DNA from: Rhodosorus marinus CCMP1338
Lineage: Eukaryota > Plantae > Rhodophyta
DNA length: 64,000 bases
Assembly (NCBI GenBank): GCA_029953675.1
Contig: JAMWBK010000002.1
Location: 992,001 to 1,056,000 of the forward strand
Reading direction: 5' to 3'
The position numbers and the translations under genes were made by a program. The notes under the pieces are model-generated. The model did no database searches and was not told the origin of the DNA. It worked only from the letters and a program-made list of their open reading frames with translations. The stretch's first letter is position 1. The number at the start of each line of letters is the position of its first letter. This document shows, in pieces, positions 5,358 to 50,087 of the stretch.

Positions 5358-7222
5358 CTACGCGGTGACGGGCAACTCGGGATCGATCAGATCTCCGAGT
5401 GAACCCTCTTCCTCCAATTTCTTAATCTTTCCGTAACCCCCAACGTACTTTCCATCGACGAAAAGCAAAGGAAGCTTCCCCGATCCCGTTATTTCCTCCA
5501 GAGCATGACCAAGTCCAGGACCACTCTGGCTGTCTTCATCGAGATTCTGCTATCGATCAAAATCAAAAAAACATTAGAATCTCAAATCGACAAGGTGCAA
5601 AGAGGAAGCAATCGCCCGCGGATAACGGAGTCCGAATAGGAAAATACACGTACAATCATAACAGAATTGGCTCCCTGATCTTCCAACAGCTGTACAAGCT
5701 TCTGCGACTGATCACAATAGGACTTTCCAAAAGCAACTAGCTTGTCTTGCTCGATCCTTTCATTCAAAAGCTGATGCCAAGTGGCTTGCGAGCGATCTTT
5801 TGGTATGCTACTGAAGCGCTTGGTGATCTCCTCAAAAGTACCGCAGACGTTGAGATGGCTAGAGCCATCTTCCGCGTTCCAACCTGCGAGCCTGACAACA
5901 TGTACGTATCGAACAGGTGAGTACATGCCAGTCGGCAAGAAAGCTTTTATCTTCTCCATACCTTGGTACTGATCCACTATTGTCGATATCAGCGACAAAG
6001 TCCGCCTCGGAAGCTAGTTCGTAAACAGCTACCGGTACCCTCTTCAAGGAATCATTCACGTCCTGCTCTCGCACGTACCTTCCAGTCTTTTCCGCCCGCA
6101 TCCTGACCCTCTCCATCACCACCTCTCTTGTTGCGTGGACGTACAATATGGCAATTCTGTAATGGTTGTTCTCCCGACGTATTTGTTCAAAAACTTGTCG
6201 ATACCAGTCATAATCCCTGCACCAGGTTACAGTCCTTAGGTGAGCAACGGCAGTGCACAATTCGAGCCTACTACAAAACTACTAATTTTCACTCCCAGAG
6301 ATTGTAATGTCTACGTACCGAAACGAACCGTCGATCCAGATGTTCTTGTTACATCTTAAGGCCGCCTCCTGGCCAATCTCTACAAGGAGGCCGCTTTCCT
6401 TCTGGGTAAGGAAGCCGGCAGTTAATCTGTCGTGCTCAACGTACTTTCCCCATTCAGGTAGCGCGAGTTTAAACTTGTCCGGGTCAAGTTGGACAATATT
6501 CTCCAGTGGAAAATAGCCTTTCTCATTCATCCACTCCAACGTATGACTTTTTCCGGCTCCCATGGGTCCAGCGGTGAAAATAATCCAAGGATGCTCAACG
6601 GATTCTCCCGTTCGAAGAACCGATTTCACAAGCTTGTCCTGAAACCATTGCCTCTCCGGTGCGTAGAACCCATGGTAGCCAGTGTCCAGTTCGCGCCGAA
6701 TATCTTTGTAAATACCAAGGTGAGTCTGCTTCTCAGGATCATCGACTCGATAGTTTTCGGCAGTTGACAAACTGAAGTCATAGGACTTCGGAACTTTCCA
6801 TTCAACCTCCTCAAGTAAACTAGTGTAGCATTGTCGTCGAAGTCGAGAAATAATACCAGAGTGGACAGAAGTATCCAAAAACTGAAGAGCATCCAGAGAC
6901 GCTAGACAATCCTGAAAGTGTGAACACAGCCGTAGCAAGGAGGAAGACGACAGACCACGAAAACGAATCAGATATCCTGCCACTTGACTTGATTATCTAC
7001 AATCGCAGCCGAGGCCCGAGCTCATCACACAGAGCCGATCCCTTTATCCAGCCCCAAAAAGCTTACCTCAGACCTCGAGGGCATGAACCCTCCTTTCTCG
7101 GCCGGCAAGTCATCAACGCTGATACTCCCGTTAATTTTATTACCAACAAACAGTGGAGCAGCCACACCTCGCTTCTTTTCCGCCAGCATGTTTCCCTCAC
7201 GCCAAACAAAATCCGGACCCAA
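5358..7222 (-). CDS. Zeta-toxin-like P-loop kinase fused to a C-terminal glutaredoxin-like domain
   Basis: Kinase part: WIIFTAGPMGAGKS (Walker A), VQLDPDKFK, NIWIDGSFR, IAILYVHATREVVMERVRMRAEKTGR. Phase-compatible GT-AG introns lead into KLVAFGKSYCDQSQKLVQLL...GKLPLLFVDGKYVGGYGKIKKLEEEGSL, with the stop at 5358. The 5' exon structure upstream of ~6830 is uncertain. Confidence 0.75.
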
Positions 7223-8966
7223 TTCCTAACCAGGGACTAAATCTCAAACTCCCGTACCGGCCCCCCCCCCCAAAAAAAAAACAAAAAACTACTGCACAAC
7301 CGACAAAAAATACAGGATCTTACATCCCTCCTTCCCAACCCAACTCTCCTCAACCTTCCTTGTCCCATAAACATGCACAATCCCCCTCTCCCACTCTCTC
7401 TCGACCTCCTCTTCCCCCTCAACCCCCCCGAATGTACATGCTTACCAACGGCACGTACTTTATAAAAGCACTTCACATCTCAACACTCCCCCCCTCCCCA
7501 CCAGCGTTACGTATCAAGATGGCAAACTTCCCCTAAACACCAAACCGAACCTGGACCAAAATTCCGGTTATTTTTTATTCACCATTCAAGAATATTCTCC
7601 AGTCAAATACCTTTTTAGGGGATAAAAAAGGAACATCGGCCAAATCAGCGTGCCTCCCGCACGGCCAGCCACATTCTTCCATTTTTAAGGAAACTCAGCA
7701 AGGACAGGCATGACTGACGAGACTCACCCAAAACCGATCTAAGATATTAGAAAACAAACAACCAAACGTGAACCGGTTTTTATTGTATGAGTTACATGTA
7801 ATTAGACTATAACATTCATATAAACATAATTTGTATACTGTAAAGTAGGTTGTACCAATTTCCTATCCGTTGAAGAGGTCGTGTTCTTTTCAGGTGAAAA
7901 ACGTGAAGAGTTTTTTCTTCCGGTTGTCCACCTGATAAAACGATACATTATTTGTATTGAATAAGCTTTTTACAAGATAATTGGTTGAAGAATCGGTTGG
8001 AGCATATCAGTCATTTTGGGTGTATTCAGTCGTTTAATAGTTCGGGCTGCGTGAGATTCGGACGTTTAGCAGAAGTGCGGAGAGCGGCGGGACGCGGTAA
8101 ACCTGCTCGGCAGTTGAAGATTGGCTTCGTGATTTTTGTTTTGTTTTTCGTTTTCTTCTTCTGGCTGAGTAAAAGGTCAGAGAGAGCGTGTCCTGGGTGA
8201 GGAGGTCAACCAGCATTGCCTGTGTTCGCTTTGGCTAGATCTATAAAGTCAACCGATATCAGTAAGTTTACAGTACTGGAAGTTAATCGTGAATAATGAA
8301 TGCTTAATGCAGCGCTTTGGTGAATTTGAGCATTCCAAGACTGGTGAGTACTACAGTGCCCATATTTTCGGGATCAAGCGCTAGTTCACACGACTTCATT
8401 AGTTCAGGTCGAGAGATGTTATCCTGGCACGTGGATATCCTGTACAATACGGGGACAAGCAGGATAGTCTCCCTCTTCCAAAACCCGGAAAGAGTTTGAG
8501 TCTATCAGTTAGAAGCTGAGAAGATGGTGGCCCTTGCTGAACTCCGCTCAGCTTCGGAATTATTAGTTACGAAGTTGAGCGCCTCTCGGACGGGAGTAGT
8601 AATACGTCTGGCCGAGTAGAGCGATGAAAATTCTGTGGATCTCTTTTGCAGTGAAGCCCTCAACAGAAACGAGGAGTCAAGTCATCAATGCTCAAATGAC
8701 GCACAAAAGTTCGTACTCTTAAAACAGGATCACGTCTGGAATTCCACAGCTTCCCTGAATCTACATTAGATAGGGTGTTGACTTAACATATCAGCACCAC
8801 TCCAAACGCGTGGATTTAAGCTCCAAGCCAACATGGCGTCATCGCAAAATGATCTTCTTTCCAGGGCTCTGTCGTCGTGTTCTTGACGGACGCTGTTGCC
8901 AAACTTTCTTCTGTAAAGCTCTCCCCACACAGATCCAATGTCACCATCCCCCCTCCCCCTCCCCCC

Positions 8967-9172
8967 TTCAAAGTGTCCGCACAAGGCCTCCCATGATCGG
9001 TATGGCCAGGTCGTGAACGTAAATGACCACGTCCTCAATCCTCCCTCCTCTCCCTCCCCCTCCCCCTCCCCCTCCCCCTTCAAAGTGTCCGCACAAGGCC
9101 TCCCATGATCGGTATGGCCAGGTCGTGAACGTAAATGACCACGTCCTCAATCCTCCCTCCTCTCCCTCCCCC
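8967..9172. repeat. Direct tandem duplication, period 112 bp, bounded by (CCCCCT)n tracts
   Basis: TTCAAAGTGTCCGCACAAGG...CTCTCCCTCCCCC occurs at 8967 and 9079 and is identical by eye. Confidence 0.9.
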
Positions 9173-10654
9173 CCAAAAAAAAAAAACAAATAACCCTATA
9201 GCAATTGAATCCTCGCTCTTTCCTGACAATCCACTTTTTGGTCTTCTTGGCTCAACCCCTCTTCCCATCAATCACCGAAAATCCCCATCAACGGGGTGAC
9301 ACCGGAAAGCACGTTTTGTCAATACTTTGAATTCACTCCAATCGGGACGGCACGATCTCACGACAACGAAATTAAATAATAACAATAAAACTATTTCTGT
9401 TTTTTGTATAAAAAAAGAAAAATCCGAAAAAATATCCTACGGAAAGGCCTGGGAATTAATCCACATAATTTAGAAATTCATCTCCTCATATCTTCATTTA
9501 AAAAAGTTACAAAAATTCATTGAAGCTAGGTCACTCACCGCAGTTTCTTTTTCATTCACTTTTCAACCTGTTTGCTCACAGCCAACCAACCACGGGCAAT
9601 TGATTTTTCCTCCGCCGGAGATCAATTTCTAAAAACTTTCTTGATCGAGCACGCACAAAAAAATTAAATTCCTAAATAGACTCCCGTGTGAAAAAAAACC
9701 ACATTGTATTTGAAATAAATTTTAAAAATGGAGGACAAATACACTTAACCAATCAATGTTTCGGAAAGAGCCAAATCGATTCGAATACAATTCCCTATTT
9801 TTAAGTTATTTTGGTCATCTGTCATCTCCGCGGATTGTGTTTTCTCTTTTTTGCCTGAGAACCGGCACTTGTTAGCTCGTTGCCAGCTCAGGAAAATGTG
9901 CTCATGGAAGTTGTGGCGGAAGGCTTTTTCTTCGGTGATCGTTTAAACTCTTCAATGCTGCATGTGGTACTCATAAGAAATCCAAAAACTTTCGACAGAC
10001 AGCAGCTCTTCGAAAGCGACGAACCCCACCTATTGGTCTCTTAGTACTTTCCGAATTCGAGTGGAGTGAAGTGTATTCGTCGTGCTCAATGTTGGGATAG
10101 CAGAAATACTCGGATGGCATACCACCCGCACGCACCCGCTCGAAACTTCCCTCACTCCCCCGCCCACCTGCAGCCCACTGAGAAAGAGAATTTGACCGCA
10201 AATCTTTGTTCCCAGTAGTCCACTTCCAAGGCTTGGGTTGAGAATAAGATGTTCACTCTGCTTTCGATACGGCCCCTGGTCTTCACCCGGAGACGCAGGA
10301 CCACCCCTAGCATTCAAAACAATACTAGATTATCATCGCTGGACATGCCAAAGTTGTTACTGAGGACCATAGCTTCTTTCTGCAACTGCTAAGCTGCAAT
10401 CTTTTATTTAGTAGCTCCTCTAGTGACTGATGATCTACAGCGCAAACCTGCCCGAGGGAGTCGAGCTCAGTTCACGTCCTGTACTGCCTAGTCGGTTTGC
10501 CAAGGAGGTGGTGGTTGACGGAGCTGGCTAAGGAGGCCAAGTTGAGGAGCGCTCATCTGAGCATAAGGGAAGGCATGTATTGCGGTTGTTGAAGGCGAGG
10601 TTAGTAAAGGCTTAGGCAGCTTTGACCGCGGTCTATTGGAGAGAAAGTTTCACC

Positions 10655-11663
10655 ATGGGGACTATAGTGAAGCTGTTGTTCTCGCTGTGCGCTCTAGTTG
10701 CCTGGGTCTCTGAGTCGGAAGCCATGGATCCGACCTGGACCCGTGCTCGACTGGGCGATGGGACCGGCATTCCTGTGGGGTCTTTGGATACTGGGTTCAA
10801 TTTGTCGAAGTCTGAACGGCTGGTGCGTGGGAACCTGTCTGGGTCGATTAGGGAGTTCCCTTATCTCGTGGGCATTTTCAAGAAACAACCTGGAGCAGAT
10901 TTTTTTATTTGCACCGGGTCAATTGTACATGAGAGAGTAGTCTTGACTGCAGCCCACTGCCTTAGCCCGTTGGTCCGGGATGCGGCGTATGTCGTTTGCT
11001 ATGGGACTGACGACTTGTCAGACCCAACGCGTCGGAAGTGCACTCAGGTTGTGGGGAGAAAAGTGCATGAGGACTTTGCTGGCAAGGATACAGCTGGCCC
11101 TTTTGATGTCGCCTTGCTGAAGACGAAGGACCCAATGCGTTCGAAGCGTACTGGGATCGTAAAGGTCGACTTCAGCAGGAGAAGCAGCAGGGGAAAGCGG
11201 ACAGGCTTGTTGGTAGGATTTGGGCTGAATCCGAAGGGATGGGACGGTAGCCTTCGATACGTGAAAGCCAAACACAAGCCTATGTCACAATGTGCCGCTT
11301 TCCGCGATGCCAAGTACTTCCAGTGTGCACGCCCAAGAGGACTGAAGGGCTTTGGGGGTACATGTTCCGGAGACAGTGGTTCTCCGTTGATCGAAGGACC
11401 GAAGAAAAACCCCAAGAAGCACAGGGTGGTTGGAGTTCTCAGCTGGGCGTTCATAGGAGAGCTTGATTGTAAGTTGCAGTTGTCCGTCCAATACCGCCAA
11501 CGCAGAACGATTTTTCACTGACAATGTTCTTCTCTCCTCCCACCATCGTGCAGTTGATTGCTCAGAGCTGCCCTCCGGCTACACGCGACTCTCCACACCG
11601 TCCCATAAGAAGTTCCTCTTTCGTTCAATGAGAGAATTCGGGGCAAAGTTCAAGACCGTATGA
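10655..11663 (+). CDS. Secreted S1A (chymotrypsin-fold) serine protease, paralog 1
   Basis: Signal peptide; SER|LVRG activation site; LTAAHC, GPFDVALL and GDSGSP triad motifs. One phase-1 intron at 11469-11553; last exon DFDCSELPSGYTRL...FKTV*. Confidence 0.9.
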
Positions 11664-12584: not shown

Positions 12585-13342
12585 GGTTACCAGAATTCAA
12601 GTGAATTCTCAGTAAAGGACCTTTTTGGGTTTGTACTTAAAGGACTACGAGCTAAAATACCACTACTACCTGCGTATCTGTAATGAAGTTTATAAGAACC
12701 CTCGCCTGCCACCAACCACTTCCAAACACTATTACTACCACTACCACAACCACCACCACGCCCCTTCCGAAAAAAAAATAGCAAATGCGGAGGTGCCCCT
12801 AAAATCAGACTAAATACTTCATTAAAAACACGCATTTTAATCATCTAGACTAAATATATAGCGTTTACTCCGCAGAAATTATTCTAGATTCCGTGCACCC
12901 TCATTTTTGAGTCTCAACGCAAAACAAAATGGAAATCTCAACCAAAATATAGACCACCAAAAACCCGTCAAAAGAATGGGTACGGTCCTGAATTAGAATA
13001 TTCTGTTCTTCTAGTCGGAAATTTAGTTAGAATTTTTTTTCACTTACCGAATACTGTAGCTGACACCCAGAACAAAATCGAAATGTTTTGTGAAAAAACG
13101 AAAATGGTGAAAATTGGGGTTATTGATTGATTTAATTTGTTTTTAAAAAAGGGATGTCATTGATTGATTTAGTTTGGAGTGGTTGAGAATAGAGCGTTAG
13201 TGCGTGTTTGAGGGCTTTTGAGTTGAGGACTGATGGTATTGGGGAAGGGAGTTTTGGGAGGGGGGTTGGGAGGGGGTTGGGAGGGGTTGGGTGCTGTGAC
13301 AGGGTTTTGAGGGTGTGATATTTGTTTAAGACAGTAACGAGG

Positions 13343-14347
13343 ATGCATTGTATAATTAGACTGTCCTTAACGCTGTGTTTTGTGTTGGTTTGTGTTTGTG
13401 GAAAGGGTGGCTTCGGTGCGTCGCAGCCGCGAACTCACGGGGTTGATGGAGGGGAGATACCGGTGAGGCGCCTGGATGGTGGGGTGGGATTGCCAACATC
13501 CGAGCGAATAAACGGGAAGGATGTGTTTAATATAGAAAGTTTCCCGTACGTCGTGGGGTTGTATCAGAGGCTCGGAGGGAGGGAGATTTACGTTTGCTCG
13601 GGGACGGTGGTGCATAGGAATGTGGTTTTATCGGCCGCCCACTGTTTTCTGGAATTCATTCCGGATTCTTCATATCAAGTGTGCTATGGAATTGCCAACT
13701 TGACAAAGAAGAACCGAATATGTACCCCCATGGTGGCGAGAAAGCTTCAAAACAGCTTCAACCGGGATGCGACAACCGGTCCGTTCGACTTGGCTCTGAT
13801 TAAGACGAAGGATCGCATTGATTCTCCTCGTACTGAAATTGCTACCGTGGACTTCAGACTGAAGAGCACGAAAGGGAAACGGGCTGGCTTTCTCCTCGGG
13901 TTTGGTCCTAGTGCGTCTGAACCAAGCGAAAGACTTCGATATCTGAAGGCCGTACACAGCCGTATGGAATTGTGCGTTAACCACACCAATGCAAAGTACT
14001 TTCAGTGCGCTCGTTCAGGTAAGAACAGCGGGTTGGGTGGGCCATGTGTCGGAGACAGCGGCGGGCCCTTGGTTGAGGGACCTGTTCACAATCCCAAGCA
14101 TCATCGCGTGTTGGGAGTACTCAGCTATACTTTTATAGACTCTGGTGGTAAGCTCGATCTCATTCTCTGATAACTACTTCTACTTCGCCCTTTGCCAAGT
14201 TCGCTGACCATGTTTGTCTGACTTCCAGCATCCCAAGGGTCATGCTCTAATTCACTATCCGGATACTCGAGGCTCTCACAACCGGCACATAAAAAGTTCC
14301 TTCTTAGAGCAATGAAACAACTGGGAGGTTGGTTCAAGCTCGCCTGA
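13343..14347 (+). CDS. Secreted S1A serine protease, paralog 2
   Basis: Signal peptide; SER|INGK; LSAAHC, GPFDLALI, GDSGGP. Phase-1 intron at 14148-14228; last exon ...SGYSRLSQPAHKKFLLRAMKQLGGWFKLA*. Confidence 0.9.
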
Positions 14348-16358
14348 GGTACAGCAAACCTGGTCTTATACGTAGACGGTGCCTTTGCTTCAAACTCGAT
14401 ACGGAGGAAGCGGTGACCGATGTGGAGTAGGGATATAAAAGCAGATGTTGAGGGACTCTTATGATGGTTATCTATCCAGGCCTTTGCAGTGGGCAGCAGA
14501 CTTCTACCCTCCCTAGGCAAGGATAAGTCCTTTTTATTGTCGTCTGCACCGCAACAGGTAGACTTGTTGCGCCCCGGACTCTGTAACAGTCTTTGCTTTG
14601 ACCTCTCAAGCCAGCTAAATCCATCGATTGACCAAGCCACATGATTTGTTAAGGCCTCGCCCAGCGGGCAACTAAACCCAAGCTCCCTGCTGACTCGCAG
14701 ATAGTGACGGTCACGGAAAACGTCGAGCGGGAAACTATTCACGCAGGGCTGGGCAGCCCGACTTGCAGTTCCTAGTCGTCCAGGTTCCTCATCGACGTAC
14801 TGAGAAAACAATGCTGAGGATCTGGACGCCATTTCTGTCCACCAGATCGGGTTTCGGGATATAAAACCGGGCGCTTTGGAATTTCACCGAAAGTCTTCTG
14901 TTCTTCTTCAGGACTCTTGAGAATGTGCAGACAGCACGAGCCAAATCTTATCACGCCGAATACCGTAGTAGGGTAGGATTTGTTTTACTGTGGGTTAGCG
15001 GGGGAGGGTGGCTTCTGCTGAGTTGACCATCCTTCAGACAAGCTCACGAAGCTACAAAGCGCTCTAGTATCCATCCATATATGCGCTTATGAAACGCACA
15101 TACGGATGCAACTTACGTCGATTCGACCTCGAAAAAAGCAACAGAAAAGAAAAGTTGGGCGTGGCCGTGGTGATTCACGCCGCGTTACTACAGGGACAAT
15201 CAACAAGACCAGTATTGCCTTCAAAAGTCCTGAGCGGAGCTCCTTAAACTCGGAAAGATCTTTTGTAGTAAAATTTACGTGACCACATGGGCTCCTTACC
15301 CTTTTTTGCCACCGAAGGAAACTAAATTTTGCCACCGAATGCAATGCTATTCTTCCCGTGGGGCTCGAAGGTTTTCACTGTGCAAGCTTTAATGAGCTTC
15401 CATCAACAACCGCCAAAGCCAAACCTTTGTAGGAGTTTCATCCTGTTGAAGAGCAAAGCCGTCTTTCGCCCTGTGAAAGCTTGAGTTGGAAATGGTCGAA
15501 CACGCCTTTCGAACTGGTCTCCGCGCAAAGTGCCCTAGTCAATACACCTAAGCAGTCTTCCTTTCCGTGTGTACGCACTGACCGCGTCGCCATGAACCGG
15601 CAACGCGTATATTATTTTCAACTAAAAACAAGTACACAAAATGTCGTATGTCTGATCTAAATTCTTTAAATAAACAGGTCCTATTTACCGTCCAGTACTC
15701 AATCAACATTTTGCTAATAATCAATCATCTCCGCAATAGCTATTGAATCATGATTACTTCTGAAAAACGAAAGCGACAGGCTGTCATAAAAAGGATGTCA
15801 CTGTTGTTCGACAGTCACTTCCAAACAGACCAGCACGCACGGGCGGGGCATTATCTGTGTTACGTGCAGCGTTTCGACGGTGGCAGTGATTTTGGATTAG
15901 AACACTGAATTCCGCGGTGAGTTTTGCTTCCTTGGGAGGGGGGTTGGCCTTAGCACAGAGTATCGTTGAGGTCACAAATATCGGAAGGCAATTCGGTCGT
16001 TATCGGACAAAAACCGAATGCAACCTCTTTAATTATTTTCTATTTCAGGTCTGATAAACTTATATAGGACGGAAGTCAAATAAGAAAAGGAACTGTATTA
16101 TTTTGAAATTCAGGTCCGAGCAGACCGTCTAATATTTACAACATTCGTACTTTTTTTTTTATCGCGCGGAGATGACAGCCTCGTCAGCTAGGGAGACAAG
16201 TTCTTCGAGACATATTCGAGCACTGGCTCCTAATAGTGGACGAGTTTGCCTTTAGGCAGAAGGTTGTCAAGTAGGCTTGCGGGGTGTGTGAAAGGGTTGG
16301 CCTTAAGGAATCGTTGAGGTGACAATTGTTTTTGTTGGTGTCGAAACAGTACGTGAGG

Positions 16359-17373
16359 ATGGGTTTTTCGATGGTGCTGAGGTGCTGCTTCGTGGCTTGT
16401 GCACTGCTAGTCACAGTGTCTGGTTTGGGTCTTTTGGATTCTCAATTGGAGCCTGCTCGTTTGGTCAATCGGACGGGGATTCCTGTGAACATATCGCCTG
16501 CTGATGACGTGCATTTGTCGACAACTGAGCGGCTGATTTTTGGGAAGACTGCTTCTTCTATCAAGAATTTCCCGTATGTCGTGGGGTTGTTTGCTAAAGT
16601 GGCTGGCGTGGAGATCTTTCTTTGCACTGGGATTATCGTGGACAAGAGGGTAATTTTAACTGCTGCGCACTGTCTAAATGACTTTATTTCGGACTCGCAG
16701 TACCGTGTTTGCTACGCCTCGGCTAACTTAGTCAACCAGAAGCTGAGAAAGTGCACTACAATTGTGGCGAAGAAGGTGCAAAACAGCTTCAAAAGCGAGG
16801 AGACAACCGGGCCATTTGACTTTGCCTTGCTTAAGACGAAGGGCAAAATACGCTCAAATCGCACTGCCATCGCCAGACTGGATTTCAGGACTTCCACCAC
16901 AACGAAGTCAAAACGGCTTGGTTTTTCGGTCGGATTCGGTCAGACTCCTTCTGGATGGGACGGCAAACTTCGATTCCTCCCTGTAACACATGGGCTTTGC
17001 GGTGATATTGATAATAACAAGTACTTCCGTTGCACAAGTTCAAATCGCCAAGATGGAAGCGGCGGATTGTGTTCAGGGGATAGCGGTGGTCCACTGATTG
17101 AAGGACGGATATCAGTGCCCCACACGCAGCGTGTGATTGGAATACTTAGCTGGACGTTGCAAGTACCCGGTTCACCAGGTGAGACAAATACAATATTCCT
17201 TGCACATTCAGACTCAACAATTCGCATATCTATCTCACTTTATTTTCCCCGTACGTCACAAAGCTCCCTGTAGTGAACTCGGAGGCGGCTACTCGCGACT
17301 GTCGCGACGAGACCACCAGAAGTTCCTACAGAAGGCAATCAAAGAATTGGGTGGAAGGTTTAAGACTGCGTAA
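16359..17373 (+). CDS. Secreted S1A serine protease, paralog 3
   Basis: Signal peptide; TER|LIFG; LTAAHC, GPFDFALL, GDSGGP. Phase-1 intron at 17179-17263; last exon APCSELGGGYSRL...FKTA*. Confidence 0.9.
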
Positions 17374-18063: not shown

Positions 18064-19724
18064 GAAGGTAGGTTAATCTGCTTGGCTTTGACTCGGTGGC
18101 CTCTTTGTAGCTACCCAGAGCAAACCAAGCTGTGACCTACTGGTTTAATTGGAGAGTAAAAGTAAACGCCGTGGGATTTTTCGTCACCCTCCGTTTGTCT
18201 TTGTTTAGTCGGTGCGTCGTTGACGGTCTTTTCTGCACCCTTCTGCCGGTAGACCTTGTTTACCGAACGGTTTGGTTTTTCTAGAAATTGTACGTTTGAG
18301 GTCACTTGCTTCGTACGGCCCTGCCACGTCTCGATAACCCCTCCTCCCCGTCCTCCCCCCACCCCACCCCCCGGCCGCTCTCAAGGTTCAGTGGAAAACT
18401 AACGACCCTGAGTGGCGTCCGAGGGAAAGGAGAGCCAAAAGCTGTCATCTAGTAGCTAGGCTCTGACTAAATTGTTGTTGTTCTTGTTGTGTAGCTGACC
18501 AGTGTGGTTTACATGGAAACTAGCGACCCAGGTTGTTCTTCTAAAGAGGGTGAGAGCGGGGTTAACAGGGTGGTGAACCCCCTCCGGTAAACCGCTCTGA
18601 CGTTCCAAACCGGATCACTTAGCAGCGCACCCCTCCTCCACCCCCGCAGAACCTAAAGATCCAGACTTCTAAATCCATTAGTTACAAGATTTTTGATCCC
18701 CTAGTCCCATCGGAATTCCCCTCCACCCCCCTTTCCCTACCACTAAAGCCATAAAGATGGAGCGGTAGTAGAGAACAGCTCTGATAAAATGTGCTGTTGT
18801 AAGTGACCCAAAATGTCCCAGAAGAAAAAAAACCGGAAAAAAAACCCACACACTCAGTGCAAAAACTCTAAAAAAAAAAAAAGTCGCTTCATCATGCTGA
18901 CAATGAAAATTCAATAAATAATATCCAGATATGAAAATCCGTTCTACAAAAAAAAACCTTCATCAATCTGTCGTCCTTGAAACATTTCCAAAAAACAAAA
19001 TAAACTGGTCACGAGGGTTAAAAGTTCTCCACGAAAAAAAAAAATAGGATTGAAATTTGTGTTGTTGGGAAGAAAGTTTGATGATATTAACGGTTAGGCT
19101 TTTTTAATAAATAAATAATCCGATATTTCTTGCTTTTTCGTATTGTTTCCTCCTCTTTTCTCGACGTGTTATTATTTTTAATACAAAAAATCCGTTGACG
19201 AAAAATAGAAAAACTAATTGTGGAAATATATACTTCTTGCTTTTCATGTACTCCTGAAATTATTAAAAAGTTAATAAACGGTCGATATGTTAATTGATTA
19301 AAAACCAACGGGGAAAATTCAATGTGAAAAGAGAGAGAAAAACAAAAGAAAACGCCGTAGTAAGCATCTCTTTTCATCGAGAGTTTGATGGGTGACGTGC
19401 AGAATGATGAAGCAGGGTGTTCTATGTCTCGGCCGGATGTGTGACCTAACCCGCTTTTACCTTTCTAACTGAAATTTTCCAGATTTCTGTCCGGATAACT
19501 AGTGAAAAACGTCAAACGGATTTTTTTGTCTTGGGGAGTGCGTTTGCCATCTGACGTGAGGATGCTATTGTCTGATGAGGTTCTTGGGGGAGAGAAGAGG
19601 GTTTTGGGAGAGAGCGAGGGGAGGGGGTTCGGGGAGGTTGGGAGGGTGGAGAGGTGAGTAGTAGTGATGCTTGGTCAGTGTACTTCTGGTTGAGGCCAGG
19701 GAGGGGGGTTACGGGTGGGATAAA

Positions 19725-20743
19725 ATGGGTTTGGTTGTTGAAATCTGTTTCTGGCTAACATTGCTTGTGGTTGCGGCGCATGGCTGGGAACTGGCGGATC
19801 CGAGTTGGGAGCGGGTGCGTCTGGAGAACGGGACGCACATTCCCGTAGAATCAGTTGACGATGGGGTTCGATTGTCAAGTTCTGAGCGGGTATACAAAGG
19901 CGCTGATATCAAGTCGATCAAGGAATTCCCGTATCTGGTTGGCATTTTTCTGAGGCGCGGTAAACAGGTTGGCTACGTGTGCACGGGGACTGTTGTGGAC
20001 AGGCATGTGGTTTTGACCGCTGCACATTGCTTTGATGATTCTGTCCCAAATTCCCAGTACGAAGTTTGCTATGCCTCTGCCAACCTTGCAAACAAGAACC
20101 TCCGCAAGTGCACGCGTGTGAAGACCAGAAAGGTCCAACACAACTTCGCTAAGCAGGATGCGACTGGCCCATTCGATATCGCCCTATTGAGGACGAAGAA
20201 CCCGATTCGGTCCCCACGTACGCAGATTGCAAAAGTCGATTTCAGAGTAAGCAGCACCAAGGGAGAACGGGATGGCCACCTAATTGGATTCGGCGTTACA
20301 GAAAGCGGTCCTTCTGCATCCATCTGGGACGGAAGGCTTCGCTATCTCCCAGCCAAGCACAGACCTATGGCACAATGCTCCAAGTACAAGGATCAAAAAT
20401 ACTTCCAGTGCGCACGCTCGAACCGCAAGAACGGAAAAGGGGGATCGTGTTCAGGAGACAGTGGGTCTCCATTGGTCGAAGGGCCGAAGAAGGATCCCAA
20501 AAAGCACAGGGTGATTGGGGTGCTCAGCTGGGCCTTCAGAGAAAACAACTCGAAAGGTATGCCCAACTGTCGATACTATTAACACAAATAAGCTAATTCC
20601 CTGACCATGTTTTGCTCCCCGAACGTCGACCAGTTTCATGCACAGAACGCGGCACAGCCTACGCAAAACTGTCACAGCCGGAGCACAAGAAGTTCCTCCT
20701 AGCAGCAATGAAAGCATTGGGAGGCAAGTTCAAGACCGCTTGA
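19725..20743 (+). CDS. Secreted S1A serine protease, paralog 4
   Basis: Signal peptide; SER|VYKG; LTAAHC, GPFDIALL, GDSGSP. Phase-1 intron at 20557-20633; last exon VSCTERGTAYAKL...FKTA*. Confidence 0.9.
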
Positions 20744-36199: not shown

Positions 36200-37209
36200 C
36201 GAAAAATCTCTCGCAAGCTTTCCCACGATGCACGTTTGGCCCGTTCTAGCCCAACGTACCACGCGGCGGCGGTATTCGTTAAGCCTCGCGTTGCCACCAG
36301 GACCTCTTGGTTTTCCTCCTCTACCTTGTAAACTTTGTGGTGAGGGTGCTGGACTTTGGAAAGGGAAATCCTCCACGTTCACGTCATCTTTCACCACTGA
36401 TGCAGGGAAGTTGCCACGGGGTGGACGCCTCGGTCTCTCGTCGCTTACTAGAAGCGCCAGTTTTCCGTCCGCTGATCGTGAACTTTCAGGAGCCACCCCA
36501 TCGAACGCAGAATACTTGTCATATCATCCGAGCTCGTTTCCGTAGGTTGATCCTCATCCAAGACCCAACAGTCCTCATCATGATGACCAACACTGAATGC
36601 GTTCGCGTTCTTTGGGGGTATAGGGTTGTCAGGTCACGCCTCAAGTAGAAGGGGCTCAGAGACTCTCGGGGAGGATCTAGCAGAGCTAGAGCCACGTATT
36701 TACCGTGAAAGATGACCAAGAGGCATGGACGATCTAAAATACATCCGTGCACTTCCAACTATCCACGCGCTCATTGAGTTATTTGGTTGCCGCTCTCGAC
36801 TAGTCTTCGGTGTTGCCCAGTTCTTCAGGGTCAGTGCTACGCAGTAACAGATTCAAGCATGCACTTGTCGCTTCTGGGTAGCACCTTGTAGCCTTTTCTG
36901 TGCCTTAGGAATATCTGGCGAAAACGGCGAAGCAGGTTTGCACCCACAGATAGACCTTCACTTACTCAGCGCACCCTTTGTCAGGTTATTCATGTTTTAG
37001 CTATCATCAGCGCCACAGTCCGTGGTTGGCAATAAAGTTCCTTGTCTCTCTGTTGTAAAACCAGATTACCAGGGTCTAGACCTCGACCTCACGGCTCGCT
37101 GTTTATCGTCTAGCTATCTTCAGCGCCGCGGTCCACCGTTGGCAATAAAGTTCCTTGTCTCTCTGTTGTAAAAGCAAATCACCAGGGCCCGAGACCTCAC
37201 GGCTCGCTG
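36200..37209 (-). pseudogene. Possible decayed retroelement gag remnant
   Basis: The minus strand shows GHHDEDCW (~36550), the H-x4-C half of a CCHC zinc knuckle, amid stops and frameshifts. There is no intact ORF. Confidence 0.3.
36998..37209. repeat. Imperfect tandem duplication, period 113 bp
   Basis: TAGCTATC...GTTGGCAATAAAGTTCCTTGTCTCTCTGTTGTAAAA...GACCTCACGGCTCGCTG occurs at 36998 and 37111. Confidence 0.85.
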
Positions 37210-41938: not shown

Positions 41939-43837
41939 CTAACCACCTATGGTTATCATCGGGCGATTTTTCCTGGATGCAATGTCATACATATCCTTTC
42001 GAACAAGATGCGATTATTGTTCTCGTTCAGCTCTCAAATCCATCGTCCCACCCGTTCGACAGATAGATGCGCTTTGACTCAAATTCTGAATTACCTGATT
42101 TCCTCCGAGAGCGTAATATTTCTGATAAATAGCTGCTTCTACGACCTCGCCAAGCTCGTCATCTGTGGCCCCATCCCGAAGCATGTCTCGTAAAGAGACT
42201 TCCGAACTCCCGAACAAGCACACCTTCAGATTCCCATCCGCGGTCATTCGTAGCCGGTTGCAAGTACCGCAAAAATGGCTGGTCATCGACGTGATGAAGC
42301 CTTTAGCAATGAAGAGAACAACGCTAGATCAGCTCAACGATACACTGGCAGGAGCATCGTGGACGCGAGGACTTGCATGAAACCGTGAACCGCCCAACAA
42401 AGCAAAAGCTTTGACGCACTTACCAATTCGCCCGGCAAAACCTGAAATCTTGTAGTGCTTTGAAGTATCGTTCTTATCGTCCACCACCTTTGAGAGTGCA
42501 CCAAACTCTGCAGTGATCTTCTCCATCGCTTCGGCGTATGACATGAATCTAAGACAGCATGACGCCGATAGAGCGTTCGGTCAGTACACCGGTAGATTCC
42601 AACGTAATCCATATCAACCTCGTAGTGCTCTTGGAAAGAGAAGAGTACGAGGAACCGTTCATCAACATACTTTTTGTCACTCCATCGATTTCCGTCAAAA
42701 GGCATGTACTCAATGAATCTAATATCTAAATCCTAGCCCATGGAGAAAGACAGCTTGTGAAGTAAGCGCTCACGTCCTGTCAGTCATGTTTCCTCACGGC
42801 ATACACTGAGCAAACCTTATGTTCAGTCATTCTACAAAAGTCGAGAAGCTCATCGTCGTTTACACCTCTGTTTGTCAGAAAGCGTTGAAGATTGCTGTGT
42901 ATTAGGGTCTGTACGAGCCGAGTGGAAAAACGGTTGTCCAGGAGTTACCTCATCAACACGCAGTTCACCTTGACTGGGCCAAAGTTGGCATCCAGACAAG
43001 CATCGATGGCGTCGATAACTCTCTCATGTCCCTGTCGTGTTCACGGGAGACAAGCGTTCTAATTACTTCTGCTAGTGTAGAAGGCGAGTGGGTATAACGT
43101 CTAAAGCTGGTGAACTTACCCTTCGCCTAGTTATCAGCTCGAACTTTTGAGGAACCAAAGTGTCAAGACTGATGTTCACAGCTGACAATCCACTGTCAAC
43201 CAAGGTTTTCAACTTCTTCTTCAGCGTAATTCCGTTTGTGGTAATGGCGATTGTTTTCCTTAACACGAGCACAAGCGCAGGTCAGTTTTCTTCATCAAAA
43301 AGCAAAAAACAAGTTCAAGCAGTCTGGTTCAGGCCCTCACAGGTTGTAACGCGGATCTCGTTTGTACGCGCCTATTCTTTGCATGATGTCATCGAAATCT
43401 TTTCGGACGAGCGGCTCTCCTCCGGTCAAACGGATCTTGTCCACTCCATAACTTAAAAAGACTTTTGAAATCCGCTCAATTTCGGAGGCGGTCAGTAGTT
43501 CATTTGACGGGCTCAATTCAATTCTGAAAGAGATGAATGGATACGGAGAGATCAACATCCGCTCAAACACTTGACAAAAACTTCTCTGCCTCTTTCTACC
43601 TACGGGTTAAGGCATTATTGGAACGTACCCCTCCTCAGGCATGCAGTACAAACACCTTAGATTACAACGCTCCGTGAGGGAGATTCTAAGGTACGTGTGC
43701 TTCCTTCCAAACGAGTCCTCCAGAATCTTTTGACGGGGGTTTATACCCTCCTTGACCAGCACAGACTGCTCCGAAAGTTTTGCATGCTTCACGCCATTCA
43801 AGACGCGGCCGCTGCTCATGTACCGCAGAAATTTCAT
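41939..43837 (-). CDS. CNX2: GTP 3',8-cyclase (molybdenum cofactor biosynthesis, MoaA/CNX2/MOCS1A)
   Basis: [27 protein letters not shown] (radical SAM CX3CX2C), [51 protein letters not shown]-terminal [10 protein letters not shown]-terminus [11 protein letters not shown] resembles a mitochondrial presequence. Confidence 0.95.
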
Positions 43838-44784
43838 TACAAACTCGTCGATAGATATTTCTCCAGCGCGGAATTTCTCTTCCAGCAAGTCACGACATCA
43901 GCTCCCAAAGTCAACTCCGTACTTGCAACCAGTCCAAAACCAAACTGGAACAAAGACTTCGAATCCCTGATCAGCGGTGGATAGACAAGCAAAGTCCAGC
44001 AAAGACAAAACACCCAGCAATTCCTTCCAGAGCAAAAACAGATCTGACCAGGTGCCGACTTCACAGTCCATCTACAGCAATATATCCAGGTTCGAATGTC
44101 GCTTTAAGACACCTCGTCCATCACCAATAAGGCCAGCAAGAAGCTCCCAAATTTTCAGCTAGGACAGTTACATTCACTACCGCAAACCTGCCCCGAGGAA
44201 AGCAAATAAGGAAGAATACTGACGAATTGCCTTTCGCGAGATGTAAGTACATCTCATAGTGTCTAAATCCATTCGCTCCATCTAGATGATGGACAAGGGC
44301 AGAGCTTTGGTCCGTTGATCGGCCGAGTTCCTGGGATACAGCTTGCTCTGGATGGTTTGTTGATTGACGTAGGGGACATAAATCCAAGCGCTCCGTCGAG
44401 AACATGTAAGAATCTACACGGATTCCCCTGCGGGGAGGCTATTAAACCGAACGGCACCATTAAACATGAGACAGTCTAAATCGAGCGATTGTTCTAGAAT
44501 ACGGTAATTTTCATATACTTTTGACTAATATTATCCTTTTTTCTCCACATTTAGTGCGGCTTCCTGCTACTTAAGCGCTCAATATGCGTAGAACCTCGGG
44601 AGTCAACGGGCCTCGAGTAAGCACCCCGATATCCACCCTCTGGCATCAAGTTCGTTAATTAGGGAACTCATATTCTCCAATATTGAAAACTAGTCGGCTT
44701 ATTTTCTTAATTATAGAAGGTATTAGAGTTCGAACTTTCAAGAAATAGAAAATCTTGGTTTTTATGGTACGAACGGTTTCGTTC

Positions 44785-45090
44785 TGTTGAAACGGTCACA
44801 CGAACGGTGACCATACGCTCTCAGCACGTAGAAGGACAATCCTCACATCGTCCTACATATGGTAGCACCAGTGTGTGGATAGTATACGGTAGGCTAACCG
44901 GATGGAGGTTCAAACGTATGAAGTAGTTTGAACCGTACAAGACATCGATCATTTCCACGGTATAGTAGATTACTTAAGTGGGAGTAAGTGGGAGATATCG
45001 ACCCCAATGGTCAGGGAAACAATAAAAAAACCATCGAAGTTTGGCTGACGGGACTTTGATCAAGGTTCGGGAACCCCGAAAAACGCAACA
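44785..45090 (+). repeat. 5' LTR (306 bp)
   Basis: TGTTGAAACGGTCAC...AAAAACGCAACA. Differs from the 3' LTR by about 7 substitutions and two indels (3 and 10 bp). Confidence 0.95.
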
Positions 45091-45105
45091 TGGTCTCATC
45101 GCAGG
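45091..45105 (+). promoter_or_regulatory. Putative primer-binding site
   Basis: TGGTCTCATCGCAGG begins immediately after the 5' LTR; TGG is complementary to tRNA CCA. Confidence 0.7.
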
Positions 45106-45171
45106 TTGCGATGTTATGAGAGAGGCGTTTATCCTTAAGGATTGGACTTTAAAGATTGGGTTTTCGAGAGT

Positions 45172-45604
45172 ATGGCGGCGAGGACCAGGGGGAGCGCTAG
45201 CGAACATGAAGCGCGCTTGAAGGTCTTCGCGCTACCGTCAGTGTTTACCGGGGATCAGGATTCGTATCGATCCTTCCGGAATTGGAGCCACCAGGTAGAA
45301 TGCTACCTGACGGTCAAAGGTCTAAGGGATGTACTCGTCAACCCCATAGACGCGACCGAAGCAGAGAAACAGTATGTTTCAGCTGTGTTCTCCAAAGTGC
45401 TGGACGGGCCAGCACTGGACACTGCCTTCGCCTCTTCCAGAGAGGCCGCTCCGGAAGAGGTGTGGGCGACACTACGGGCTAGGTATGAGCCCTCATCACG
45501 CAAGGCGGCTGACAAGGTATGGAGCAGAGTGTACAGGCGGAAACTACACTCTGCTGAGGCCCCTCGGTTCCTTGTTAACTGGTTAGAAAATCAGTTTGCG
45601 GAGA
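45172..45604 (+). pseudogene. Truncated copia gag
   Basis: MAARTR...LPSVFTGDQDSYRSFRNWSHQVECYLTVKGL...WATLRARYE... It is interrupted at 45605 by the inverted RT copy. Confidence 0.8.
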
Positions 45605-46719
45605 TGGTCGCGTTCTGGTCCTTAGGTAAAGGAGAGACCCAGTTAGCTCCTGAAATGGTAATGTGGTCATTTCCATCAATGTCTCTTTCGTAGAAGGTGC
45701 GACGGTGGATGGCGTGGATATGGTGCGGCTGCCCTTCAAAGCGTATGTGGTGGTAAGTTTACGGATGTAATCTCACTGCGAGAGGTAGATTTCCTTTTTC
45801 CTCCTGTCTCGCTCGATTCTCACACCAAGGAAATCTTGTGGCTCTCCTAGGTGTTTGATGTCGTACAAGTCGGACAACATCAGCTTCGCCGTCTCCACCT
45901 CAGTACGGCTTCCGATGATTAACATATCATCCACGTATACCGCGATCAAGCACTTCTCTCTACGGTAGACGCAACTCTCGGTACGTAGCTTCTGAAATCC
46001 TTGCGCACCGAGATCATTGCTGAAGCCTTTAGGGAGCATGTCATGGTAATGAAAACGCAACATAGGGCAAATGTAAAAAGACTCAAAAGTGACAACGCAC
46101 TTGAGTATAGTAGCATGAAACCCCTACTACGTGACCTCGGGTCCCACGTCCCACGTGATACGCGACCCACGTCTCACGTGATACCCAGGTCACGTAGTAG
46201 GGGTTTCATGCTACTATACTCAAGTGCGTTGTCACTTTTGAGTCTTTTTACATTTGCCCTATGTTGCGTTTTCATTACCATGACATGCTCCCTAAAGGCT
46301 TCAGCAATGATCTCGGTGCGCAAGGATTTCAGAAGCTACGTACCGAGAGTTGCGTCTACCGTAGAGAGAAGTGCTTGATCGCGGTATACGTGGATGATAT
46401 GTTAATCATCGGAAGCCGTACTGAGGTGGAGACGGCGAAGCTGATGTTGTCCGACTTGTACGACATCAAACACCTAGGAGAGCCACAAGATTTCCTTGGT
46501 GTGAGAATCGAGCGAGACAGGAGGAAAAAGGAAATCTACCTCTCGCAGTGAGATTACATCCGTAAACTTACCACCACATACGCTTTGAAGGGCAGCCGCA
46601 CCATATCCACGCCATCCACCGTCGCACCTTCTACGAAAGAGACATTGATGGAAATGACCACATTACCATTTCAGGAGCTAACTGGGTCTCTCCTTTACCT
46701 AAGGACCAGAACGCGACCA
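45605..46719. repeat. Long inverted duplication: 533-bp arms, 49-nt spacer
   Basis: 45605-46137 is the reverse complement of 46187-46719. The ORF track gives the same 96-aa RT peptide on both strands (45773..46063 - and 46261..46551 +). Confidence 0.95.
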
Positions 46720-47394
46720 GATATAAGTTTTGCAGTTGGCCTGATCAGGCGAAAAATGTCAGATTATTCACTTGGAGATTTTTAAAAGGCGCGGCGGATC
46801 CTGAGATATTTGGCGGGAACACAAGGCAAAGTCATGAAATTGGGCGATGTTTCGAAAGTGGATCCAGATGGCGAAGAGCCCCCGAAGGATGGCGAACAGG
46901 GGTTATTCAGATATCAAGTTACCGGATACTCAGACGCGAGCTGGGCAAGCCACCAAGACAGCAAGAGCACTACAGGGTCACTGATAATGATCAACGGATC
47001 GCCGGTGGCGTATAGATCGTGGAAGCAGAGGGCAGTTGCTCAGTCAACGGCGGAAGCTGAGTACCAGGCGCTGGGGGATATGTTAACAACTCAGCGATGG
47101 GTAAGTGAGCTGATAATTGAGACTGGCCGAGAAACGAGTACGCCGATGGTGGCATACACAGATAATGTGTCATGCCTACGGTGAGCGACAACCGGAGACA
47201 GCAGGATGTCGCGTCACGTATCGGTTAAACTGCAATATGCAAGGGAGAGATGCACATTGGGAGAGGTACAACTGAAGTACCTCAGCACGAACGAAATGGT
47301 AGCAGACTTGCTCGCCAAAGCTTTAACGAAGGAAAGGACGAGGGTCCTACTGTCTGACCTGGGAGTTGTAGATCGATCTTCTACTGTGGCATGA
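46295..47394 (+). pseudogene. Degenerate copia reverse transcriptase-RNase H
   Basis: GFQKLRTESCVY, YVDD, TRPDISFAV, RILRYLAGT, SDASW and STAEAEY are present, with in-frame stops near 46549, 46783 and 47182. Confidence 0.9.
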
Positions 47395-47407
47395 GAGCGA
47401 GGGGGAG
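47391..47407 (+). promoter_or_regulatory. Polypurine tract
   Basis: ATGAGAGCGAGGGGGAG lies directly before the 3' LTR. Confidence 0.85.
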
Positions 47408-47706
47408 TGTTGAAACGGTCACACGATCAACGGTGACCATCCGCTCTCAGCACGTAGAAGGACAATCCTCACATCGTCCTACATATGGTAGCACCAGTGT
47501 GTGGATAGTATACGGTAGGCTAACCGGATGGAGGTTCAAACGTATGAAGTAGTTTGAACCGTACAAGATATCGATCATTTCCACGGTATAGTAGATTACT
47601 AAAGTGGGAGATATCGACCCCAATGGTCAGGGCAACAATAAAAAAACCATCGAAGTTTGGCTGACGAGACTTTGATCAAGGTTTGGAAACCCCGAAAAAC
47701 GCAACA
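47408..47706 (+). repeat. 3' LTR (299 bp)
   Basis: TGTTGAAACGGTCAC...AAAAACGCAACA, followed by AGTTC. Confidence 0.95.
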
Positions 47707-48701
47707 AGTTCTCCACCATGCTAGCATAAAGATGATGTTTGCCTGGCGAGGAATTAATTTAGCTTTTCATATATATACTTGTTCTTAAATATGAAATAAG
47801 TTCTAAGCTGAATCAGGATTCGTCGTATGGATTGCTCGATAATTTGATTTAAAGAAATATTTAAGTGAATTATATCGTATATCCTACCGTGCACAACTAA
47901 GTCAATTCTATTTATTCTTAATTATGATGTTGAGATCTTTTTCTAAACAGCTGCTAAGGTTTGAATCGGCATCGCAAGCTATCAGCGTGGAATCTAATTG
48001 GTTGGATGATAATCCTACATTAAAAGGAGCATCTCTTCCAGCCCTTTGTCGTCCTGAGCAAGAAACCCATCCTGCGAATGGCCAGAGATATGTTCCCCCC
48101 TATTGTATTCTAATGTATTGTCATATACGGCAATTTTATTGTATAATAATTAAACATTTGGAGAAGTACCAAACTCTTTGTTGCCAAGTGTTGGAGGCAA
48201 TGGCACCAGGTAGATAGGGGGTTATGGATATCTCAGGAGCCCTATCCGGTTCTCTCTAAACATATGTGAATTTCTCTTAATTGTTTTAGCTTTGGTTCTA
48301 GCTAATATTACTTGTGGAGGACTGGATTGTGTGAGAATGCCTTGATCCCATTTGAATGCTAAGCACGTGAAGCCCTGAGAAACCAAATTCCTGCCAAAGT
48401 GTCACCACCCTTTCAGTCTATTTCATGATCAATACTGTGTTTTTAGCAACAAATTGACAATTATTCAATCAATTGGATTTGTAGATTGCTTTTTTGTATA
48501 TGACACTTATCTCATGTCTTCTTTTTCCAGATGCTATCTCTCAATGTCAAATGTCAGGTACTTTTTGAGGATGGAAAGGGTGAAAATGTATAACTGCGGG
48601 GGGTGGGGGGTGGGGGGGAGATGGGGGTGATAGAGGTCGAGTAGGGTATGGTTTTGAAGAAAATCTGTTTTGTTTGATGTTAAGGTTCAAGCGTTTGAGA
48701 G

Positions 48702-50087
48702 ATGATTGCAGACAGGTGTGGCAATATTCTTGAACCCGCGTTTGTTTGGTCTTGTTTCCGGTTTTGTTTTCGGGACAGAATTCGTGTTGCTAGGGTTAAC
48801 CCTCAAGGGAGGGGCTATCGAGCGCTGAGACGACTTCAGGAGAACGAGAAGGAAAACTCGGAGAACTTCTTCTTCGCTTTTTCCAATGCGAAGGAAGTTG
48901 TAACTAGCCTAGATGAACGACGCAGACTGTGGGCGGAGGTAAGCAGGGCACTCTTGCGCCTGGCCTGTTCCTCCTCCTTCAAGTGCACGAAAATCCGTCG
49001 AAAGAGACGGGTTGTAGACGTCCAGTATGTTTCTGTAATGGGCTTTCGGACTACCCACCTATTTTATTATTGCCTTTACTGTAACTTCATCATCTGATGA
49101 TCTTGATGTGGGGGGGATGTGGCCCAACTTTTTTACGTTTTGTAGATTCTGTCCATGGAAAAGTACTTGGATAGGCTCGTGCAGCTCGAACGCTTCGCAG
49201 AAGCTGCTGAAGTACGAGATGAAATCAGAGGGTTAAGGAACAGAGACCTATGGGCGATCCTTGAAGCGGAGCTGAAATGCGCTGTCCAAGAGGAGCGATA
49301 CCTGGATGCAGCCAGAGTAAGACTGGACCGGGTTCGAAACTCAGTTCTGGACGTTTCGGATATGTTTGCTTACTTTTGATTTTTGCTGTTTAATCTTCAG
49401 ATTCGTGACGAATTGAAGCTGGTGCCTCCGCCTCCCGGTGTGGAAGCGGAATGTGCTTCCACAGACGAACTGCCTCCGATCAACGCGTCTCCTGCGAGCG
49501 AATGCGTAAGTGAAGGGATAAGAGTAGCAGCACAGAGTTTTCTACTTGAAGAAGAGAGCAGCCCACCAGATAACACTTTTGTATTTGGCTACAAGGTGGG
49601 AAAGCAACACATACCAGGAATCCCAACGCAGAGCGTGTCGTATCAATGTATTGCAGGGGATCTCAGTGCCACTGTTCGCCCTTCCATCTTGCTACGAAAG
49701 GTTGTAATAGCGAACGAATCTCTACGCACCGTACAGCTTGTTCGGAGACACTTGCGGATTAGGACAGAATCCGGCACTGTGGCAGAGTTAAATGGAGTCG
49801 GAGTAATTGGAAGGCAGCCAGTCCTGACTCCCAACGAAAAGTTTTCGTACACATGCATGTGTCCATTGATTGCTTCAGAGGTAAGCAGAGCCACACACAA
49901 TGGTGTGTGATATGGCTTGTTTTCTTAACCCCGCACACTCTACGAAAATTTGCAAAACTGGTTCTAGGGAGGCAAAAGCGGCACCGTACTGGGGTCCATG
50001 AAGGGCTCATACGACTTTGTCACTGGAAACGCTGGGCTCAAGACCTTCCAGGCAAGGGTACATGAGTTCTTTCATATCCTTCCATAG
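48702..50087 (+). CDS. Protein with tandem UVR motifs and an ApaG (DUF525) domain
   Basis: LVQLERFAEAAEVRDEI and AVQEERYLDAARIRDEL (UVR-type coiled coils), then FVFGYKVVIANES...VQLVRRHLRI...GVGVIGRQPVLTPNEKFSYTCMCPL...GSMKGSYDF...ARVHEFFHILP*. The start codon is uncertain. Confidence 0.85.

Follow-up and report, generated by a model that had tools for sequence, protein, structure and literature searches.

That hairpins can set off silencing is an established principle in maize, Arabidopsis, flies and fungi. Hairpins from transposons that have become rearranged or nested count among its accepted triggers (PMC3440606, PMC11624286), and two systems are useful for comparison. Mu killer, which silences the maize DNA transposon MuDR, is a defective copy carrying an inverted duplication of its own coding sequence; its hairpin of ~4 kb comes from transcription that reads through from a neighbouring gene, and both small RNAs and heritable silencing in trans have been demonstrated for it (PMC3440606). 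In the Arabidopsis Copia family EVD, rearranged copies with the potential to form dsRNA against their own family arise as antisense nested or tandem insertions, the inverted sequences being the LTRs of two separate insertions ~2-2.5 kb apart (PMC11624286). Among red algae, small RNAs have been reported in mesophilic species including Porphyridium and Chondrus (PMC12026948), while the cyanidiophyte red algae have lost both Argonaute and Dicer (PMC12770821), so that RNAi is not to be assumed in a red alga.

The window considered here, meaning the whole 64-kb stretch of DNA that was analysed, contains at 44785-47706 a 2,922-bp derivative of a Ty1/copia-type LTR retrotransposon with a long perfect palindrome at its centre (Table 1). 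The initial annotation had taken it for a candidate hairpin-RNA silencer of its own family, and this reading is partly supported: the locus is a defective LTR retrotransposon that has been rearranged and could give a hairpin, and the structure and the relative dating that had been proposed for it hold.

Table 1. Parts of the Copia derivative and their positions in the window
Feature	Coordinates	Strand	Remarks
Left target-site duplication candidate	44780-44784		CGTTC; 4/5 positions identical to AGTTC
5' LTR, 306 bp	44785-45090	+	TGTTG...CAACA; TATA-like TATAGTAG, AATAAA, 10-nt tandem duplication
PBS	45091-45102	+	TGGTCTCATCGC, starting TGG; directly adjoins 5' LTR
Gag remnant, ~155 residues	45142-45604	+	open frame continuing into left arm
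Left arm	45605-46137	-	RT on minus strand, 45605-~46026 (P0001 residues 116-255); integrase-like on plus strand, ~46027-46137
Spacer (loop), 49 nt	46138-46186		non-symmetric
Right arm	46187-46719	+	integrase-like on minus strand, 46187-~46297; RT on plus strand from ~46298
RT C-terminal half and RNase H	~46298-47394	+	single frame
PPT	47393-47407	+	GAGAGCGAGGGGGAG; adjoins 3' LTR; conserved in L001 and L002
3' LTR, 299 bp	47408-47706	+	TGTTG...CAACA
Right target-site duplication candidate	47707-47711		AGTTC; 4/5 positions identical to CGTTC

The outer frame is that of a complete element, and the LTRs, PBS, PPT and imperfect, candidate target-site duplication previously described around 2.9 kb of sequence were all recovered. 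The same 12-mer PBS adjoins the LTR in a Rhodosorus marinus transcript of the family (L002). Scans of the 64-kb window for tRNA genes and Rfam families found no tRNA gene and no Rfam match. A small hairpin, CATCGCA-GGT-TGCGATG at 45097-45113, overlaps the end of the PBS, and L002 has a similar one, ATCGC-TTGG-TGCGAT, in the equivalent position. The two LTRs differ by seven substitutions in 296 aligned nucleotides (2.4%, or 97.6% identity; four transitions and three transversions) and by two indels of 3 and 10 nt, in agreement with the earlier estimate of ~2-3% plus indels. A 10-nt tandem duplication, AAGTGGGAGT at 44975-44984, follows closely on the TATA-like TATAGTAG of the 5' LTR and has no counterpart in the 3' LTR; it might alter the function of the 5' LTR as a promoter. 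The poly(A) site of the LTR is putatively placed from the transcript of a second R. marinus relative, L003, which is polyadenylated ~25 nt after an AGTAAA in its 3' LTR.

Within this frame, little of the coding capacity of an autonomous element is left. The intact order of protease, integrase, RT and RNase H typical of autonomous Ty1/copia elements is absent: the protease, most of the integrase (of which at most a fragment of 110-160 nt may be present) and the first ~115 residues of RT are missing, and the RT-RNase H frame is broken by in-frame stops at 46549-46551, 46783-46785 and 47182-47184, the first of which lies within the right arm and has its mirror image at 45773-45775 in the left arm. 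The copy is a dead, non-autonomous Ty1/copia-type relic. Its class is clear from the RT, which matches Pfam RVT_2 (E = 5e-13) over profile positions 138-242 of 244 only, and all 395 homologues are RVT_2 proteins. The closest of these, P0001, is a 479-residue RT-RNase H protein from the Logan assembly of run SRR32518362 and is 73% identical in amino acids to the RT-RNase H frame; the alignment takes in its residues 116-477 at 46300-47385, with residues 116-255 matching a second time, on the opposite strand, at 46024-45605. The gag remnant, which gives a weak Pfam match to DUF4219, is 75% identical in amino acids to its only relative found, the R. marinus transcriptome protein P0121, and its homology to L002 stops at ~45604-45606, which is the boundary of the arm.

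No full-length parent of the family was found in a metagenome scan with P0001, which returned only Copia elements at 55% identity or less, and exact-word scans with a 29-mer of the RT against bacterial/archaeal genome and viral collections gave no matches. A scan of the window for promoters and terminators of bacterial type is uninformative for a eukaryote. The nucleotide sequence of the closest RT relative (L001, Logan SRR32518362) carries an 18-nt direct repeat, TGTTGGAAATCCTAGGGG, twice within its positions 1-60, with an in-frame stop shortly before the RT, and this copy may be truncated or rearranged as well.

The element is flanked by two host genes, one MoaA/MOCS1-like (42014-43888, minus strand) and one with an ApaG domain (49383-49910, plus strand). 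Elsewhere in the window, four trypsin-like serine protease genes stand in tandem on the plus strand between 10622 and 20582 (10622-11521, 13322-14170, 16326-17273 and 19671-20582), spaced ~3.0-3.4 kb apart and all with the Pfam Trypsin domain. In Logan run SRR32518361, whose accession adjoins that of SRR32518362, the source of the closest RT, the last of them has an orthologue that is 87% identical in DNA over 1,044 nt; its next named relative is an R. marinus protein, 56% identical in amino acids. Together with the R. marinus relative of gag, these matches make a Rhodosorus-like (stylonematophycean) red alga the most likely source of the window. Also present are an open reading frame on the minus strand at 6285-6983 that matches the Pfam family Zeta_toxin, a P-loop kinase (E = 1.3e-12), although the genome looks eukaryotic, two tandem units of 111 nt that are 96% identical (8950-9172), and two units of 86 nt, 113 nt apart and 85% identical (36989-37187).

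The palindrome was located by a repeat finder as a single inverted pair, 45605-46140 and 46184-46719, and a base-by-base scan at the symmetry axis resolved this into 533 perfectly complementary nucleotides in each arm around the 49-nt spacer, exactly the figures given in the initial annotation. The complementarity ends abruptly at 45604/46720 in the same scan, and there is no further inverted repeat of at least 60 nt anywhere in the 64-kb window. A perfect inverted repeat of 533 nt cannot have arisen by chance. Homology to RT begins at 46298-46300 in the right arm and ends at 46024-46026 in the left, and each arm is therefore composite, consisting of ~420 nt of RT joined to ~110 nt of integrase-like sequence in the opposite orientation. 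The interior thus holds at least three strand-switching junctions, since the integrase-like piece runs opposite to the RT within the arm: from gag into antisense RT at 45604/45605, between RT and the integrase-like piece at ~46026/46027 (mirrored at ~46297/46298), and at the turnaround, 46186/46187. The second of these is present in both arms, so that it either predates the copying of the arm or was formed in the same event.

The spacer has a structure of its own. Two 19-mers of the form CCCACGTC(C/T)CACGTGATAC, at 46143-46161 and 46166-46184, repeat with a period of 23 nt and a single mismatch and constitute a tandem duplication. The self-complementary tetramer ACGT occurs four times in the 49 nt against 0.14 expected (P ~1.6e-5), although these counts are not independent of one another because of the tandem duplication, and CACGTG occurs twice. 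The ends of the spacer, GGGT (46139-46142) and ACCC (46183-46186), are complementary to each other, with an offset of one base from the register of the arms.

The identity of the inner ~110 nt of each arm is the least certain part of this anatomy. On the plus strand, the inner segment of the left arm reads ...AFREHVMVMKTQHRANVKRLKSDNALEYSS..., which can be aligned with the F..F...IK.LRSD.GGEF pattern near the second catalytic Asp of Copia integrases. Searches of ~46027-46186 returned no Pfam match even at E = 10 and no homologue in a word-indexed protein search; tblastn of the segment against integrase-bearing Copia loci gave only alignments at E = 5-7, at the right place. A home-made HMM of the integrase core scored 3.5 bits, a score matched by 15 of 2000 shuffles of the core and 8 of 2000 of the core plus spacer (~0.4-0.75%), and the two orientations of the spacer gave 3.6 and 4.1 bits. 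These results are suggestive only, and the segment is called integrase-like here, not integrase. The central segment was also considered as the N-terminus of RT or as further gag, and both were rejected, as neither residues 1-115 of P0001 nor L002 has similarity to it. Of the earlier claim that the arms cover RT and integrase, the RT part therefore stands for ~420 nt, a simple uninterrupted stretch does not, and integrase is suggested at most.

The contrast between arms and LTRs provides a relative date for the palindrome. Had the arms diverged as far as the LTRs have (2.4%), 12.6 differences would be expected between them, and none is observed (Poisson P ~3e-6), which places the 95% upper bound on arm divergence at 0.56%. 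The statement that the arms are more alike than the LTRs is accordingly correct. Such a deficit means that the arms are young, or have been homogenised by gene conversion, or are artefactual. Gene conversion is known between closely spaced inverted repeats, and conversion from arm to arm could give an old palindrome a young look. That the inversion post-dates the insertion, as had been claimed, is therefore a reasonable reading of these numbers and not one that they force.

The explanation that accounts best for these observations, and to which we give about an even chance of being right, is that strand-switching template switches of the fold-back type reorganised the interior of a dead copy already inserted in the chromosome, the palindrome being a neutral by-product. 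Followed along a full-length element, the path would have led forward through the 5' LTR and gag to 45604, backward through RT (45605-~46026), forward through the integrase-like piece (~46027-46186), backward through the same piece (46187-~46297), and then forward through RT and on into RNase H and the 3' LTR. The original would be one arm, which may be either of the two, together with the spacer, and the other arm would be its copy. A growing DNA end is proposed to have folded back at short self-complementary motifs (ACGT or CACGTG, and GGGT:ACCC), to have copied its own strand or the sister strand, and to have switched again, either to gag or invisibly within RT. The route could have been template switching during replication or the repair of a break. 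The short self-complementary motifs and the small duplication at the turnaround would be the expected trace of fold-back priming or serial template switching; against this model counts the GGGT:ACCC pair at the turnaround, which is one base off the register of the arms. Deletion derivatives are normal in this Copia family, the R. marinus transcripts L002 and L003 both joining gag to the tail of RNase H. The arms being identical and the LTRs 2.4% diverged, the fold-back copy was most likely made after insertion, on chromosomal DNA. Mechanism and timing are what we infer from this pattern of junctions and identities; neutrality is assumed, and a by-product of repair is the most likely status of the palindrome. 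A perfect hairpin of 533 bp in the genomic RNA of an element would be a poor substrate for reverse transcription, and the structure probably does not spread.

Template switching by reverse transcriptases is established for retroviruses and Ty1, and an alternative origin places the rearrangement one step earlier, in the aberrant reverse transcription that created this copy, with the arms kept identical since then by gene conversion. The nascent strand would have switched to a second cDNA, snapped back to copy itself and jumped to gag. Reverse transcriptases make strand switches like those at all three junctions, the family readily gives rise to internally deleted copies such as L002 and L003, and the rearrangement sits neatly within an otherwise complete frame of LTR-PBS...PPT-LTR. 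Arms made at insertion should however have diverged as the LTRs did, and the absence of any of the 12.6 expected differences means that this origin needs gene conversion as an extra process; it also requires a template of minus sense for the integrase piece inside the particle. We regard an origin during reverse transcription as unlikely, and post-insertion rebuilding on the chromosome as the better account.

A different question is whether the palindrome has a function. The RNA spanning 45560-46760 is predicted to fold into one uninterrupted hairpin of -1148 kcal/mol, as the earlier proposal of ~0.5 kb of dsRNA in a spanning transcript had anticipated, and on this folding model any RNA left by a polymerase that crosses both arms must form 533 bp of dsRNA. 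By analogy with Mu killer and MuDR, the locus might then be a natural hairpin-RNA silencer, its transcript starting from the 5' LTR or a neighbouring promoter and being diced to silence the intact Copia family in trans. Besides the predicted hairpin, the 5' LTR retains its termini, a TATA-like box and AATAAA, and a poly(A) transcriptome from R. marinus includes members of the family, polyadenylated after the signal in the LTR. These transcripts do not speak for initiation in the LTR, however. In L002 (1-1672) and L003 (1-1747), both from the R. marinus transcriptome JGI 3300017118, gag abuts the final ~70 codons of RNase H, and both run from flanking DNA through the entire 5' LTR; because they begin upstream of it, they are read-through RNAs and not LTR-initiated ones. 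The 10-nt duplication beside the TATA-like box in the 5' LTR of the window copy also weighs against a promoter there. Targets are lacking among the sequences compared, the window holding no second copy of the family and no 21-mer of the arm outside the element, and the relatives found are 70-76% identical in DNA and share with the arm an exact word of 19 nt at the longest. Literature searches that combined Rhodosorus with retrotransposon or with Argonaute returned no papers. A silencing function, modelled on Mu killer and on the hairpin-forming arrangements discussed for EVD, is a legitimate but improbable hypothesis, and it is still more doubtful that the locus is a trans-silencer of the Mu killer type in Rhodophyta, a transcribed hairpin that feeds RNAi in a presumed stylonematophycean host and silences the Copia family from which it came.

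A sequencing or assembly artefact has also to be weighed, in which a fold-back chimeric long read, or an error of consensus or polishing, made or perfected the palindrome at what is in truth a simpler deletion derivative. Perfect identity of the arms is what chimeric reads of template and complement would produce, short-read polishing is able to erase small differences between near-identical repeats, and a single assembly is the source of the structure. When four open reading frames of the element (125 aa across the centre, 183 and 174 aa across the junction of gag and arm, and 96 aa of RT) were looked up by exact sequence, no record and no independent assembly came up. The literature yielded one nuclear Rhodosorus assembly (PMC10250338), which is at chromosome level, was put together from Nanopore data with NextDenovo, was polished with Pilon and is accompanied by RNA-seq; it may or may not be the source of the window. 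Against an artefact, a fold-back read keeps its symmetry to the end. Here the left arm continues into gag, the 5' LTR and unique DNA, and the right arm into RNase H, the 3' LTR and another stretch of unique DNA; with flanks that do not mirror each other, an artefact would take two false joins, independent of each other, at the same locus. No 11-mers of SMRTbell, Nanopore, Illumina or Nextera adapters occur in 45501-46800, the spacer is element-like, rich in ACGT and possesses its own tandem duplication, there is no other palindrome in the 64 kb, and the locus lies inside the contig, its target-site flanks matching at four of five positions. The caution attached to perfect foldbacks from the beginning remains justified in general, but the usual artefact of a fold-back read is disfavoured by the asymmetric flanks, and an artefact altogether appears very unlikely. 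A nested antisense insertion, finally, was rejected as the origin of the palindrome, there being no internal LTR and both arms showing the RT/integrase-like junction in mirror image.

What the locus means depends on which of these readings holds. A palindrome that is both real and transcribed would offer a natural test of whether dsRNA controls retrotransposons in a red alga outside the well-studied seaweeds, and a clean example of how an accident of repair can make a dead element give rise to RNA directed against its relatives. If the trans-silencer were true, it would fall in a lineage, the Rhodophyta, in which very little work has been done on small-RNA silencing of transposons and some members of which have lost RNAi. 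If it is a silent relic, it is still a well-resolved rearrangement with three strand-switching junctions inside an LTR retrotransposon, in which perfect arms beside diverged LTRs give the event a relative date.

In its junctions, the locus resembles FoSTeS/MMBIR rearrangements or snap-back duplications made by reverse transcription, having an inverted copy, a short spacer, a self-complementary turnaround, a small tandem duplication and a loss of sequence between the switch points. Those mechanisms have been defined by experiments or from many junctions with known parents, whereas the parent is missing here and microhomology can only be guessed. With Mu killer, the window copy has in common that a defective element bears an inverted duplication of its own coding sequence with the potential to form a long hairpin (PMC3440606). 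Mu killer derives from a DNA transposon, however, and its RNA products and effects have been demonstrated, while the present case concerns an LTR retrotransposon of a probable red alga, with arms of 533 nt and a predicted hairpin. The antisense nested and tandem insertions of EVD are similar in that a rearranged Copia copy could give rise to dsRNA against its own family (PMC11624286), and differ in that two separate insertions supply the inverted LTRs; here, an internal piece of RT is duplicated in inverse orientation within one copy, around a loop of 49 nt and with no internal LTR. As internally deleted, non-autonomous derivatives of this family, the R. marinus transcripts L002 and L003 share with the window copy the LTR, the PBS TGGTCTCATCGC, the PPT and gag, and in them, as in the window copy, the protease, the integrase and most of RT have been lost. 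The R. marinus derivative is a plain deletion, whereas the copy in the window combines strand-switch junctions with a perfect palindrome.
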